DNA of 64,000 nt. Source: Orbicella franksi. Its lineage: Eukaryota. Shown here piece by piece: positions 25,492 through 57,200 of this stretch (its first letter is position 1; each line of letters opens with the position of its first letter). Under the pieces are notes generated by a model. The model ran no database searches. It had not been told where the DNA came from and was given only the letters and a program-made list of their open reading frames with translations. The position numbers were made by a program, and so were the translations under genes. The DNA is taken from the NCBI GenBank assembly GCA_964199315.1, contig OZ116708.1, positions 12,090,001 to 12,154,000 of the forward strand, given 5' to 3'.

Positions 25492-25839
25492 TTAGACCAC
25501 ACTCTTATTCCAGGGATGGGTCAGGACCACATCTGGTGAATCCTCGTCAAAGTTGATCGGCGTGACTTGGAAATAGCTAACAAGCTCATCCATTGATTTG
25601 AAAGTCATGTCGTCTTCCATTGAACCAAACTGAGCAACCAAGCCGTCGCTGACCTTGTCATATCTGAAAGGCAAGTGCCTGAATGCTGGTCCCCCTTCGG
25701 GTGCCCGTACCGTCAGAAAGAACTCATTGCTGTTAGGGCCTTCGCGAACAAGGAACGTGCCTGGTTTCACCATTGAAGAAAGCATTTCCTCAGCTTCCAG
25801 TATTGTGATCTTTTCGTAGAAGTATGGCTCGTTGCATAC
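25492..25839 (-). CDS. hedgling: Hedgling last exon: cytoplasmic SH2 domain
   Basis: [17 protein letters not shown]...GTFLVREG...FFLTVR...FRHLPF...[12 protein letters not shown]...LTHP; ends WNKSVV*. Confidence 0.85.
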   Translation of the reverse strand, partial: VCNEPYFYEKITILEAEEMLSSMVKPGTFLVREGPNSNEFFLTVRAPEGGPAFRHLPFRYDKVSDGLVAQFGSMEDDMTFKSMDELVSYFQVTPINFDEDSPDVVLTHPWNKSVV

Positions 25840-28800
25840 CTGCAAAACCCAATTTGTCATTTAGTTACGAAACTTCTACGATGAATTGTGTTTAGTTATG
25901 TTTTTGTATACCTAACTATTGAACTTATGAGAGTTGTCGCTCCTTTAAAACCTTGCACGCCTTGTTTTCTTTAAGGTAAGGTATTTCTTTTCTTAAATGT
26001 TTCCCTACATAAGAACGCTACTACTTTCCTAGATTTCAAGGTAATTCTTTTGCATATCGTGAGATATATGACGTTCCATTCTGCACTGGACAAAAACAAA
26101 TAGGGTGTTGGTGAGGCTAAACTTTCAAGGGTCAAAGTTGTCTTTCGGGACTAAGACAGTTTTGAGAGCTAATAATTATAAGAATGAACCAATCAGATCG
26201 CTTCCTTTCTGTCCTACATAATATTGTTTAGGTAGTCTTTTGAAACCTCTTTAGAGTTGCCTTTTGCCTCTTTGTCAAAACGAGTCTCCGTGCGAAACCA
26301 TTCATTTGGAAATGCGTTCCGCCAACATGTTCATTTTCATGCAAATCAAACTCATTTTCGTATGAAGGGTTTTGCAAGAAGACTCGTTTTGAAACAGAGG
26401 CACAAGGTAACTCGGACATGACCTAATACAACATATTCAGGATCGTACTGGGAGAATATAAGTCTTCCGTTTACCTTCTGTACAGACGTCGCTGCACTCG
26501 ATCCGTACTGGCAAGACTAAGGGCTGATATTCTCAGTACAGCCCTGACGATTGGTTTATAACTCAAATTTGGTCTTTGCTTGATATGATAACTCACCGTG
26601 GCTGATTTCTTGTTTTTTGGTTTACCAAGATCAACTTGAACCATGAATTGTTGTTCTTCATCGTCAGAAACATCACAATTCTCGTCATAAGCTACATTGA
26701 GGTAGTGTTTCTCTGAGCGACAGATGTCCTTGACAGACCTGTCTCTCTGGAGTATAGATTCTTCACTATCCATTCGTGTCATTACCGCTCTTTGTTGAAA
26801 TGAGTGGTGGAAATTCGTAGGTTTGTTTCGCCTAGAGGGAAAACAACGCAGGTAATTGCTCTATTTTGTTGAAAATACAGTCGAACCCCTATCAAGCGGC
26901 AACCCTTGGGAAAATGGGAGGTGGCTGCTCAATAGGAGATCGTTGGGAGTTAGGATGGGGCTTGGTAGAAACTTCAATTATACATATGCAAACTTGCTTT
27001 AAGGCAACATAAAAAAGAATGAGGTGAAGGTAATAATACTCGTGTGCCTAAATTTTTTTAATCGATGATCGCTCTCTACTTCGGACTCTTATCTGTCATC
27101 GCCTTTTCCAAAACAAAGTTAATTTACACGCATCAAATTTTGGGTGGCCCTTTTATAGGATTAACGACAATAGGACAACCAAAGGTTGCCGCGGCAACTC
27201 CATTAACTCCACCAATGAGATGCAAAACTTGAAAAGAATCACGATTTGGTCACGTGCGTTTTCCCACGCTTGGCGTAGGTCACGTGCTTACACTTTGACC
27301 AGGGCCTGATGCGCGTAAACAAGTTGGAAAGCCACGAGAGCTAGAGGGGAACAGCGAGTTCAACTTCCTATGTTACCCAGGCTATTAACGTGTCATAATT
27401 CTTACCCTTTTTTGGCAACAAAAGCAGCGGCAGCCACGCAGACGATGACAACAAAGAGGCCAATCGTCAAACCTACGATTAAACCAGTCTTTGACGACGG
27501 CTTAGCTGTAAAACCACGGGAAAAATGAAAATTAGTACTAAAACCTCCAAAGTAAATATTGTCTATAGTCACTTAAGGACCTGAATTGAGGTAGTAACAC
27601 ACTATACTAAAATACTGGTGTAAGGCAAGTACGGGCATAGCAGAATAAATGGGAATTGCAGGAAAAATACGAGTGTTTTCTTCAATTCCCAACTTCTTCC
27701 AAGTAACTTATTGTAAGTGTTTTTGTTGTTGTTGTTGTTGTTTATGTATTTTAATAAAACACGTTATTTTAACCAAATAGGTTTGGAGAGCATGGAACAT
27801 CTATCTGTACAACAGGCATGTCATATTCACTGCTGATTCACTTTTCGTCGTACAAAACCATCCTCAAACCGTTGGAAAGTTCATAGATACGCCTGGAGAC
27901 AACACAGCCACGGTACAACTGATGATTGAGCTTGCCTTAACTGTTTGAATGAATATATTATTATACAAAATCAAATTAATAATTACCTGTCTGTGGTTCT
28001 GTGTAACCTGCAAAAATAACAAGAAAATACCGTTTGAGTATCAGACCATTCCAAGAAATGGTTGTCGAGGGCAAAGCTCATGGAACGAAAGAGAAACCTT
28101 AATACTTCTATAGCAATGCTTTCAACAAGCACGAGACTGCGAAGCCATGATAACTGAGCAGCGGTTTCGCGACTAATGTGACTCGTCAGTCCAGGGTAAG
28201 GGATTCCGGTCTATAGGACAACTTAGAGAACGTTTTCATCTCTCTAAGCTCGATCTTCCATCATCCGTAGCTTCTTAAACACTTGCCAAGCCAAAAGACA
28301 CTTATTTCACGTGAACAAGATCCAGAGCTCTTCTGACTAAATTAGCTCGTAAATCCATATACTTTGGGGCGACACAGACCTAGTTTTTGTCTGCCTTTTT
28401 TTAAAAGCGAAAAATACTTACTGGTTGAAGCACTGTCCACTTTGAAGCCATACTGCTCTAAATCCTCGGCTTCTCCACTGTTGATCATTTCAACAACTTT
28501 ACCGGCCGTCAAATCACTTCCAGATTCACTGTCTCGAGCAAATAATGTTAACTTGACCCTGTAGAGGGAACGTAACACCGCTTAGCCAGAGTTGGAGAAA
28601 ACACAAAATCTCCTCAGTAAACGCCACATATCTAATAAAGTGTTATTGTGAGAATTTGACGATCTCTGTGACAATGAGCTTAGCGGCGTGAAGACCCCAT
28701 AAAAAGGAGTATCGCTGATATTCCGTGTCTCTGAGACGCGGTGTAAGGATATTTTTAGAATCACTTTTCTACTTGTAAGTAGGGTTTTTCAGGCCTAAAA

Positions 28801-55964: not shown

Positions 55965-57076
55965 GTTGTACAGCTTGATTACGGATGGTATCAGAGCAAT
56001 ATTGGAAAACTTCGATTCAAATGCAAGGTTTAAATGTCCGATTTATGGTGAAACGCAGATTTCTATGAAATGTTCAAACAAGGTAGATTGCTTTTGTGAG
56101 TTGAGGAACTGTCTTGCAGTATAGTTGCCAAGGATCTGCCCCTAAAGTGTAACACTATGCGGTATTTATACAAAATGCAAACAATAGGTGATTAACCTTT
56201 GGTTATTCGCACAGTTCCTAATTTCATGCGTCAGCCAAATTCCTTTTATGGACAAGGCTTCCGCTAGACTATTTGTACTCGTGTGACAACCTCTCCTGAA
56301 TTTGAAAAGTAAAGAACAAAAGCTTATAAGCAGAAGGAAAAAAAATTGTATGAGTGAAGCGAAACCAGTGACACGTGTTGGATCTGTTTCAAAATGTATT
56401 CAACTCGAAAGCGATTCTCCAAATATGGTTCCTGGGTCAGTCCTACGCTAAAAGTGTTGTTTCTACATCTCGTGATTCTAGGCTACAGGTTGCGACACGA
56501 ATTTAACGCCCAATTCCGGTTATAACCACTGCACTTGACGGACGTGTCAACAAACCGAAGTTATAAGGAAAACAATGGATCTGGTTTAGAAGTCACGATG
56601 TGATTACTCAATCATTTAGTCCATGACGATTTCAATTCTAACCCAAAACCTTAGAAATAGAAGGTATCCAATTTAGAAATACCTAAATAACAGGTTTAAA
56701 AACCAGCTTACTAAATCCTGCTGATTTCTAGAAGAAAAAGATATATATCCCCCCGGCGGAGACTGGATGACAAACCGTAGAAATGACGTTCGTTTTAAGA
56801 ACTGGTCGCGTTTCATAAAATCTAGGGTACAGGGACGTCACAATCCACAATCATGCTAGACTTAAGCTCCATTTGCGCGACCTGTTTCCTCCGAGAAGAC
56901 TACTAGAAAAGAGAGGGGAAAATAGGCCATTATAAACAGTTTCGAAAAGGGAGACCCGGTGAACAGGAGACAATTGCGTTCATTGGTGTGTTTGAATGGA
57001 CTTTTCTGCGTTACCTAATCCTTTTGTTTTAGACGTTCAATCATACACTTTTTGCATATATTAGTTCATAACTTAC

Positions 57077-57200
57077 CTTGTTTTCGTTCGCTTAAATAAG
57101 TTTTAATTTTAATCCTCGGCGTGTGCGGTACGAATCGGAACTTCTTGGACTATCCCGTTTTACGAACTGCACGCTACCAAGGCTGGGTCAACCTCGTTCC
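57077..57200 (-). other. Possible 5' UTR exon of Hedgling
   Basis: Strong donor AAG|GTAAGT at 57077/57076 and a candidate acceptor just upstream of the ATG. The 5' boundary is unknown. Confidence 0.35.

Follow-up and report, generated by a model that had tools for sequence, protein, structure and literature searches.

Evidence for an expressed 35-exon Hedgling gene in the coral Orbicella franksi

Hedgling genes have been described since 2007 (Adamska et al., in the passages of 10.1101/2024.10.29.620203 and PMC4054682 that cite this work). According to PMC8061703, the family occurs in choanoflagellates, sponges and cnidarians but not in ctenophores, placozoans or bilaterians. Its adjacent Hedge-VWA cassette has been stressed (PMC4054682), and a matrisome study in Nematostella grouped Hedgling with the planar-polarity factors (10.1101/2024.10.29.620203). 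The locus described here lies in a stretch of 64,000 nucleotides from Orbicella franksi (assembly GCA_964199315.1, contig OZ116708.1, positions 12,090,001 to 12,154,000), called the window below, from the first letter of which all positions are counted. An original prediction, made from the letters of this stretch, had proposed a complete Hedgling locus, and its account of the taxonomic distribution agrees with PMC8061703. The minus strand from 55964 to 25492, together with a 3' untranslated region (UTR) of at least 0.5 kb, is interpreted here as one expressed 35-exon gene, the coral Hedgling orthologue, encoding a type I membrane protein, with a probability of about 0.93.

Among the described systems, the Hedgling of Nematostella vectensis is built of the same domains in the same order, from signal peptide to C-terminal SH2, and Pfam finds SH2 in both proteins. 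It stems from a different anthozoan order, and the coral protein is 29 residues longer, with 13 extra C-terminal residues ending in SVV. The Hedgling of the sponge Amphimedon queenslandica (P0292, A9YRX2, 2,416 residues) and that of a calcareous sponge (P0062) likewise begin with a head of Hedge, VWA and beta-sandwich, followed by cadherins, Ig and EGF, and are 33-34% identical to the coral protein over the first ~1,650 residues, but they are ~1,000 residues shorter and no SH2 was detected in them. FAT and Dachsous cadherins share the very long tandem cadherin ectodomain, the membrane-proximal EGF modules and the single transmembrane (TM) segment. In contrast, FAT carries laminin-G and none of Hedge, VWA and SH2, and Dachsous has none of the non-cadherin modules.

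The relation to Hedgehog itself is confined to the N-terminal domain. The coral Hedge domain (residues ~30-169, after a signal peptide of residues 1-22) aligns over its full length to ShhN and DhhN, whereas canonical Hedgehog also has a Hint/Hog half and an intact zinc and calcium site, and coral Hedgling lacks both. The Hint family was absent from every exon scanned with Pfam and from the collinear Acropora orthologue. In the zinc site, RALD has become RALR (Asp to Arg) and YYES has become HYAT (Glu to Ala), while the two His are retained, and the acidic calcium-binding loop (EENTGAD) is deleted, in agreement with the metal-site losses reported for Hedgling in 10.1101/276295. The signal peptide is followed by SIGPGQ and no Cys. 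In Shh, the motif at this place is CGPGR. Furthermore, the Hedge domain stays attached to a membrane protein of 3,300 residues, unlike Hedgehog. Scanning the 497-Mb genome for HH_signal returned three loci, of which Hedgling is single copy and the other two are Hedgehog-like. These two (C5:22027530-22028163 and C11:23418727-23420207, the latter 11 Mb from Hedgling on the same contig) have a two-piece HH_signal with scores above that of Hedgling and are presumably the genuine Hedgehog genes of this coral; the intron after HYEG in Hedgling splits the domain likewise.

Between 25.5 and 56 kb of the window, the minus strand shows a chain of open segments in which Pfam finds, in this order, Hedge, VWA, cadherins, two Ig, a weak EGF and SH2. 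The isolated domain-bearing open reading frames (ORFs) named in the original prediction were recovered in their places, each with Pfam support. The gene model comes from a dynamic programme over splice sites and codons, with tblastn matches of Nematostella Hedgling (P0158, 3,480 residues) as guide, and was then corrected by RNA joints. In the window, P0158 gave a collinear chain from its residue 27 to residue 3480. The final model begins at the ATG (55964), ends at the stop codon (25494-25492) and has 35 coding exons, all 34 introns being GT-AG, and its coding sequence of 10,530 nucleotides translates into 3,509 residues with a sole terminal stop and no frameshift. The exon count and the open frame proposed earlier were thus recovered exactly; the proposed length of ~3,495 residues is 14 below the counted one, and the proposed boundary at 25492 coincides with the final base of the stop codon, although the transcript continues into a 3' UTR that reaches at least to 24950.

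Reaching the cnidarian family members by searches took a detour. With the Hedge exon as query against 1.8 billion representative proteins, nearly all matches were genomic ORFs of a single exon, running on into the intron behind HYEG, and were set aside, the single long match being sponge Hedgling, and a word-indexed search with sponge Hedgling found no cnidarian Hedgling. P0158 was retrieved with a profile from a mixed alignment of the sponge protein with the coral Hedge and VWA exons, and its N-terminus is identical to the Hedgling sequence of Nematostella vectensis given in 10.1101/276295.

Collinearity with Nematostella Hedgling supports the identification. P0158 is covered by a single BLASTP alignment (model 26-3496 against 27-3480, 49.5% identity), and the global alignment has only four gaps of at least 4 residues, so that the proposed Hedgling identity, including the order Hedge, VWA, cadherins and TM, holds. 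The nearest full-length relative found is a RefSeq protein of Acropora muricata (P0280, 'protocadherin Fat 4-like isoform X2', 3,512 residues), which is 65.9% identical (6-3509 against 7-3512) without a gap of more than 2 residues anywhere, the few that adjoin the 34 exon joins included. Its name is automatic, the identity of 66% implies a distant coral lineage, and Pfam finds in it HH_signal, VWA, 21 cadherin stretches, two Ig, EGF and SH2. Another cnidarian relative (P0287, 3,507 residues) is 38.6% identical to the model from end to end and is encoded as a single uninterrupted ORF on an intronless RNA contig of 10,801 nucleotides, with HH_signal and SH2 in its precomputed Pfam list. Full-length single RefSeq models exist for Acropora muricata (3,512 residues) and Actinia tenebrosa (3,496 residues) under FAT4 or dachsous names. 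The suggestion that pipelines could easily split the gene therefore does not apply to these two, but it fits the RefSeq model of Montipora, which is truncated at 2,637 residues. Since the family is published and full-length models are available from other anthozoans, the gene is already known and the present result is a correct and well-supported annotation, not a discovery.

At the 3' end the continuity of the gene was directly observed. PolyA reads of two samples (X23 and X24) and metatranscriptome contigs (X1) were placed on 24950-30949, where they showed CT..AC joints (GT..AG on the minus strand) at 25839/26597, 26831/27406, 28558/29119 and 29384/30577, each with 39-51 reads in X23 and 10-17 in X24. 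RNA depth was zero in intron bins and 15-30 per orientation in exon bins. RNA confirmed all joins between exons 29 and 35, which links the EGF exons, a microexon, TM, tail and SH2. That these exons and the juxtamembrane ones are spliced to one another is settled, and the claim of one gene has direct support in this part. Expression was seen in RNA of adult coral. Two donors of the model were shifted in frame by these joints, to 30577 and 28422, and donors at 30550, 30539 and 28380 were ruled out. One X1 contig extends from 30869 into the final letters of exon 28. This contig, which bridges exons 28 and 29, has A at position 31517 and the assembly has G, probably a polymorphism between colonies. 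The exon 29-30 joint occurs in two forms with similar reads, 29383/30576 and 29384/30577, both of which skip 1,192 nucleotides, and the one-base shift is probably an alignment effect of a junction polymorphism. In X23, X24 and X1, a joint 27509 to 28420 contains 15 intervening letters, which match the centre of the microexon at 28007-27987 in reverse complement. This exon of 7 residues just outside the membrane was used in all spliced reads of the three runs and would easily be overlooked by a homology-free gene finder. RNA depth continues to at least 24950, which gives a 3' UTR of at least 540 nucleotides; on the minus strand, the UTR may extend to an AATAAA seen near 24360-24365.

For joins 1-28, the model is based on orthology, on the intronless mRNA contigs of relatives and on RNA runs that contain the Hedge exon. 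The latter is present at 0.86-1.0 of its words in 14 RNA runs from more than 10 studies, several of which also contain 0.44-0.60 of the cadherin body, where the exon share is 0.48. The one-gene claim is therefore supported indirectly at the 5' end, by joins without gaps of more than 2 residues, the P0287 contig and the Hedge exon in these runs. The open segment of exon 1 has no in-frame ATG upstream, and the same exon end is found in 17 related genomic ORFs. A 5' UTR exon, presumed from its putative donor (...aacaag before gtaagt), would end near 57076, within the 1.2 kb between the ATG at 55964 and 57200.

Two in-frame choices were made by comparison with orthologues. An alternative donor of exon 11 at 45513 was rejected, as the Nematostella and Acropora alignments leave no room for the extra 28 residues. 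Likewise, reading 33136-33062 (75 nucleotides, open and in frame) as unspliced was rejected, as its predicted 25 residues are absent from the Nematostella and Acropora proteins, and it has GT-AG ends.

The N-terminal head of Hedgling consists of three adjoining parts. The Hedge domain, which ends with ...HASVIRD at residue ~169 and is split across exons 1 and 2, directly abuts a VWA domain that starts at residue ~170 in the next exon and is likewise shared between two exons, 3 and 4. In this domain (residues ~170-350), the residues of a metal ion-dependent adhesion site (MIDAS) are all present at the level of sequence motifs (DGSGS, Thr in GGWTYT and Asp in LLTDG). Between VWA and the cadherins lies a module of ~115 residues (352-470, exons 5-7, 49828-50886; P0280:353-470) that is present in all Hedglings examined, including those of sponges, with invariant Cys, NPGP and F and a nearly invariant WD.LF. 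Pfam gave no match in this module. An AlphaFold model, for which the Acropora orthologue served as proxy with 12 sequences, predicts an eight-strand beta-sandwich (predicted local distance difference test, pLDDT, 79, core >90). The best Foldseek match was a collagenase PPC domain (E 8e-4), and comparison with collagen-binding domains gave Z 12.0 and a root-mean-square deviation (rmsd) of 2.8 over 104 residues for ColG and Z 11.8 and rmsd 2.5 over 107 residues for ColH. The sandwiches of the SID1 ectodomain, GOLD and PliG scored almost as high, and although the predicted fold is like that of the PPC-type domains of ColG and ColH, the sequence identity is only 8-13%, with no Pfam match. Collagen binding is not implied by the sandwich fold alone.

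A repeat hidden Markov model (HMM) built from the protein recognised 21 contiguous cadherin repeats (residues 464-2674) running across 15 exon joins, and a degenerate 22nd, with 20 calcium-binding linker motifs of the DxNDN type across the array. Towards the membrane, a multibasic site (RRIRR, encoded within 29119-29384) is conserved at the same place in each of the ten aligned cnidarian orthologues (P0280, P0158, P0278, P0284, P0282, P0283, P0287, P0288, P0290 and P0294). The juxtamembrane module around it had no match in Pfam; in a model of the Acropora orthologue (pLDDT 70), it takes a beta-alpha-beta-beta-alpha-beta arrangement, the basic site lying in a loop predicted to be disordered. 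This predicted fold is consistent with, but does not demonstrate, a SEA-like module. A single TM segment (~3290-3313) lies in the only hydrophobic window that scores above 1.8, at residues 3286-3316.

The SH2 domain of the tail scored above the Pfam cut-off (4e-8), and its GTFLVREG aligns to GSFLVRES of SHP-2. Judged from this motif, the coral SH2 has the Arg of FLVRES by which phosphotyrosine would be bound. Pfam also finds SH2 in the tails of the Nematostella, Acropora and P0288 proteins, and precomputed lists include it for Actinia and another four orthologues. It was not found by Pfam, even at E <= 1, in the C-terminal 300 residues of the Amphimedon protein P0292, the calcareous-sponge protein P0062 and the Hydra protein P0290. 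The Hydra model stops exactly where the SH2 exon would begin, and the absence from Hydra could therefore be an annotation gap, with the last exon missed.

Several points weigh against the interpretation as a single 35-exon Hedgling gene with the properties described. Direct reads of Orbicella cover the 3' end, and joins 1-28, the transcription start and the putative 5' UTR exon lie outside them. The in-frame alternative splice sites of exons 11 and 24 were decided by homology. Both structure models were built on the Acropora orthologue in place of the coral protein, and the fold matches of the juxtamembrane module are at background level (PCDH15 MAD12 Z 7.3, SEA domains Z 6.5-6.9). Adhesion, matrix binding, cleavage and phosphotyrosine binding are all predicted functions. 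Furthermore, the polyA run X21, labelled as the same species as X23 and X24, had reads on repeats and none on exons, from which it follows that either expression depends on sample or stage or that the X21 label spans different material.

An alternative is that there are two transcription units or an internal promoter, in which case exons 1-4 or 1-7, with the Hedge-VWA head, would be transcribed apart from a FAT-like body with TM and SH2. The RNA reads were placed on 24950-30949, away from the 5' third of the locus, and a Hydra isoform (P0294, 3,120 residues) aligns only from model residue 239 and has no HH_signal in its precomputed Pfam list, so Hedge-less isoforms may exist in cnidarians alongside the full form. 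However, the frame is continuous through 34 joins, joins 1-8 have no gaps of more than 2 residues against full-length orthologues, and relatives have the whole protein on single intronless mRNA contigs. Exon 1 also occurs in the same RNA libraries as the body, and Hedge and VWA are each divided between two exons. A separate head is on all this evidence very improbable. The automatic names of the closest named proteins, 'protocadherin Fat 4-like' and 'protein dachsous-like', and the FAT and Dachsous cadherins as next best matches to the cadherin array would fit an ordinary protocadherin of the FAT4/Dachsous type whose similarity to Hedge is incidental. This is very improbable in view of HH_signal and VWA scores far above the Pfam cut-offs, the lack of laminin-G in the Pfam scan of the collinear Acropora orthologue, and the collinearity with the Hedglings already published from Nematostella and Amphimedon.

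A further alternative is decay or mis-assembly of the locus, the long frame being forced by model-building. The final model is homology-guided, and the first homology-free models, from a gene finder based on codon usage and splice scores, were unreliable and were rejected: 77 exons were obtained without an intron penalty and then 32 with one, with real exons missed or truncated. Yet 10.5 kb run without a stop or frameshift, independent RNA joints land on model sites and corrected two donors in frame, and the window (~40% G+C) contains not a single N, so that decay or mis-assembly is hardly credible. The single Hedgling gene thus remains the preferred interpretation, and its exons are listed in the table.

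Table. Exons of the Orbicella franksi Hedgling model and the 3' UTR, with encoded parts and supporting evidence (positions in the window)
Feature	Residues	Position	Strand	Content and evidence
Exon 1	1-123	55595..55964	-	ATG, signal peptide, first Hedge part; ends HYEG, then gttagt; Pfam HH_signal 2e-17; aligns to Shh
Exon 2	124-169	54096..54233	-	Second Hedge part; Dhh/Shh alignment 3e-10; own-genome HH_signal match; join without gap >2 residues against Acropora
Exon 3	170-271	53171..53475	-	VWA N-half, DGSGS MIDAS motif; Pfam VWA 1e-28
Exon 4	272-358	52301..52562	-	VWA C-half; tblastn 54% identity to Nematostella Hedgling; join conserved
Exon 5	359-401	50758..50886	-	Beta-sandwich start; alignments and Acropora orthologue fold
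Exon 6	402-443	50486..50610	-	Beta-sandwich, NPGP motif; alignment and Acropora orthologue fold
Exon 7	444-496	49828..49988	-	Beta-sandwich end, cadherin 1 start (HMM from residue 464); tblastn 61% identity, Nematostella
Exon 8	497-805	48036..48961	-	Cadherin repeats 1-4; Pfam Cadherin, repeat HMM, tblastn
Exon 9	806-913	47271..47594	-	Cadherin array; tblastn, Acropora join, repeat HMM
Exon 10	914-951	46499..46613	-	Cadherin array; tblastn, Acropora join, repeat HMM
Exon 11	952-1010	45597..45771	-	Cadherin array; donor 45597 preferred to 45513 by homology
Exon 12	1011-1042	44872..44968	-	Cadherin array; tblastn, Acropora join
Exon 13	1043-1147	44070..44384	-	Cadherin array; tblastn, Acropora join, repeat HMM
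Exon 14	1148-1355	42911..43533	-	Cadherin array; ORF, tblastn, repeat HMM
Exon 15	1356-1458	42029..42339	-	Cadherin array; tblastn, repeat HMM
Exon 16	1459-1538	41131..41368	-	Cadherin array; tblastn, repeat HMM
Exon 17	1539-1735	40141..40732	-	Cadherin array; tblastn 58% identity, repeat HMM
Exon 18	1736-2039	38499..39410	-	Cadherin array; ORF, tblastn, repeat HMM
Exon 19	2040-2401	36976..38061	-	Cadherin array, largest exon; Pfam Cadherin 3e-70, 4 stretches; tblastn, repeat HMM
Exon 20	2402-2610	35723..36349	-	Cadherin array; repeat HMM
Exon 21	2611-2650	34989..35108	-	Cadherin repeat 21; tblastn, repeat HMM
Exon 22	2651-2721	34305..34516	-	Repeat 21 end, degenerate repeat 22; tblastn, repeat HMM
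Exon 23	2722-2750	33870..33958	-	Degenerate repeat 22 end; tblastn, repeat HMM
Exon 24	2751-2791	33137..33257	-	Ig 1 start; intron 33136-33062 by homology
Exon 25	2792-2856	32866..33061	-	Ig domain 1; Pfam Ig_2/Ig_3 1e-8
Exon 26	2857-2946	32218..32487	-	Ig domain 2; Pfam Ig_3 1e-16, I-set 2e-14
Exon 27	2947-2976	31819..31907	-	Linker; tblastn, conserved join
Exon 28	2977-3043	31517..31718	-	EGF-like domain(s); tblastn 5e-17
Exon 29	3044-3141	30577..30869	-	EGF-like, juxtamembrane start; RNA joint 29384 to 30577; Pfam EGF weak
Exon 30	3142-3229	29119..29384	-	RRIRR basic site, Cys-containing juxtamembrane module; RNA joints both sides
Exon 31	3230-3275	28422..28558	-	Juxtamembrane; RNA joints, donor 28422 not 28380
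Exon 32	3276-3282	27987..28007	-	21-nucleotide microexon; RNA joint; residues in Acropora protein
Exon 33	3283-3315	27406..27505	-	Transmembrane helix; RNA joints both sides
Exon 34	3316-3394	26597..26831	-	Cytoplasmic tail; RNA joints 26831 to 27406 and 25839 to 26597; tblastn to Nematostella tail
Exon 35	3395-3509 + stop	25492..25839	-	SH2, C-terminus ...KSVV; Pfam SH2 4e-8; 51 + 17 spliced reads
3' UTR, read-covered part		24950..25491	-	RNA depth ~50-60 per orientation in X23

Several features besides the coding exons were observed in the window. The intron between exons 29 and 30 contains a hairpin with very high RNA depth (29512-29637; 54-nucleotide arms, 98% complementary, and an 18-nucleotide loop). 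Its reads run off into unlike sequence, and with 1,300 or more candidate sites across the genome it belongs to a dispersed palindromic repeat resembling a miniature inverted-repeat transposable element; it has no Rfam match and was rejected as a local RNA gene. RNA depth far above that of exons, with loose ends on both sides, was also seen at 26150-26550 and 29940-30025 (introns) and at 25419-25449 (3' UTR), and these stretches are presumably copies of repeats expressed elsewhere. Between 24000 and 58000, no RNA family of Rfam was matched. At ~33600-33760, in intron 23, a microsatellite translates as LPPS/PPSL repeats in three frames. The neighbouring ORFs, judged by eye from their translations, resemble an endonuclease with a terminal GRF-type zinc finger (18496-19527, plus strand), a C-type lectin (20912-21433, minus strand) and an ETS-domain exon (61618-61980, minus strand).

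As to function, Hedgling probably acts as a giant atypical cadherin, and the role as a receptor assumed in the original prediction is hypothetical. A calcium-stiffened rod of ~22 repeats would present the tethered head of Hedge, VWA and sandwich to a neighbouring cell or to the mesoglea. Since a Hint half is lacking and the metal site is not intact, Hedgehog-like release and lipidation would not be expected, and the Hedge domain would most likely stay tethered as a binding surface and be neither a released lipidated ligand nor a peptidase. At the level of a guess, cleavage at the multibasic site would yield a two-chain receptor, and the SH2 domain would let the tail dock onto partners phosphorylated on tyrosine. 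Matrix binding by the head is a reasonable guess from the MIDAS-type VWA and the predicted sandwich that resembles collagen-binding domains. The detection of Hedgling in mesoglea preparations of Nematostella, with gastrodermal expression (10.1101/2024.10.29.620203), fits this guess. A tip in which Hedge, a MIDAS-competent VWA and a sandwich of the collagen-binding/PPC fold would form a three-part head, kept from sponges to corals and binding collagen or mesoglea, is a tentative idea and on present evidence rather unlikely to hold in full.

The value of these results lies in a verified annotation, with exact exon coordinates, a 21-nucleotide microexon and two in-frame traps for pipelines, of a gene that is labelled FAT4 or dachsous in databases. 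Its expression in adult coral RNA opens the gene to in situ and knock-down work in a reef-building species. Knowledge is extended only by how the module between VWA and the cadherins is read structurally; as a predicted fold, it suggests a testable role of the head in matrix binding. If the head binds collagen or mesoglea, Hedgling would be a cell-to-matrix cadherin that signals via its own SH2, and the N-domain of the Hedgehog ligand would descend from a matrix-binding module.

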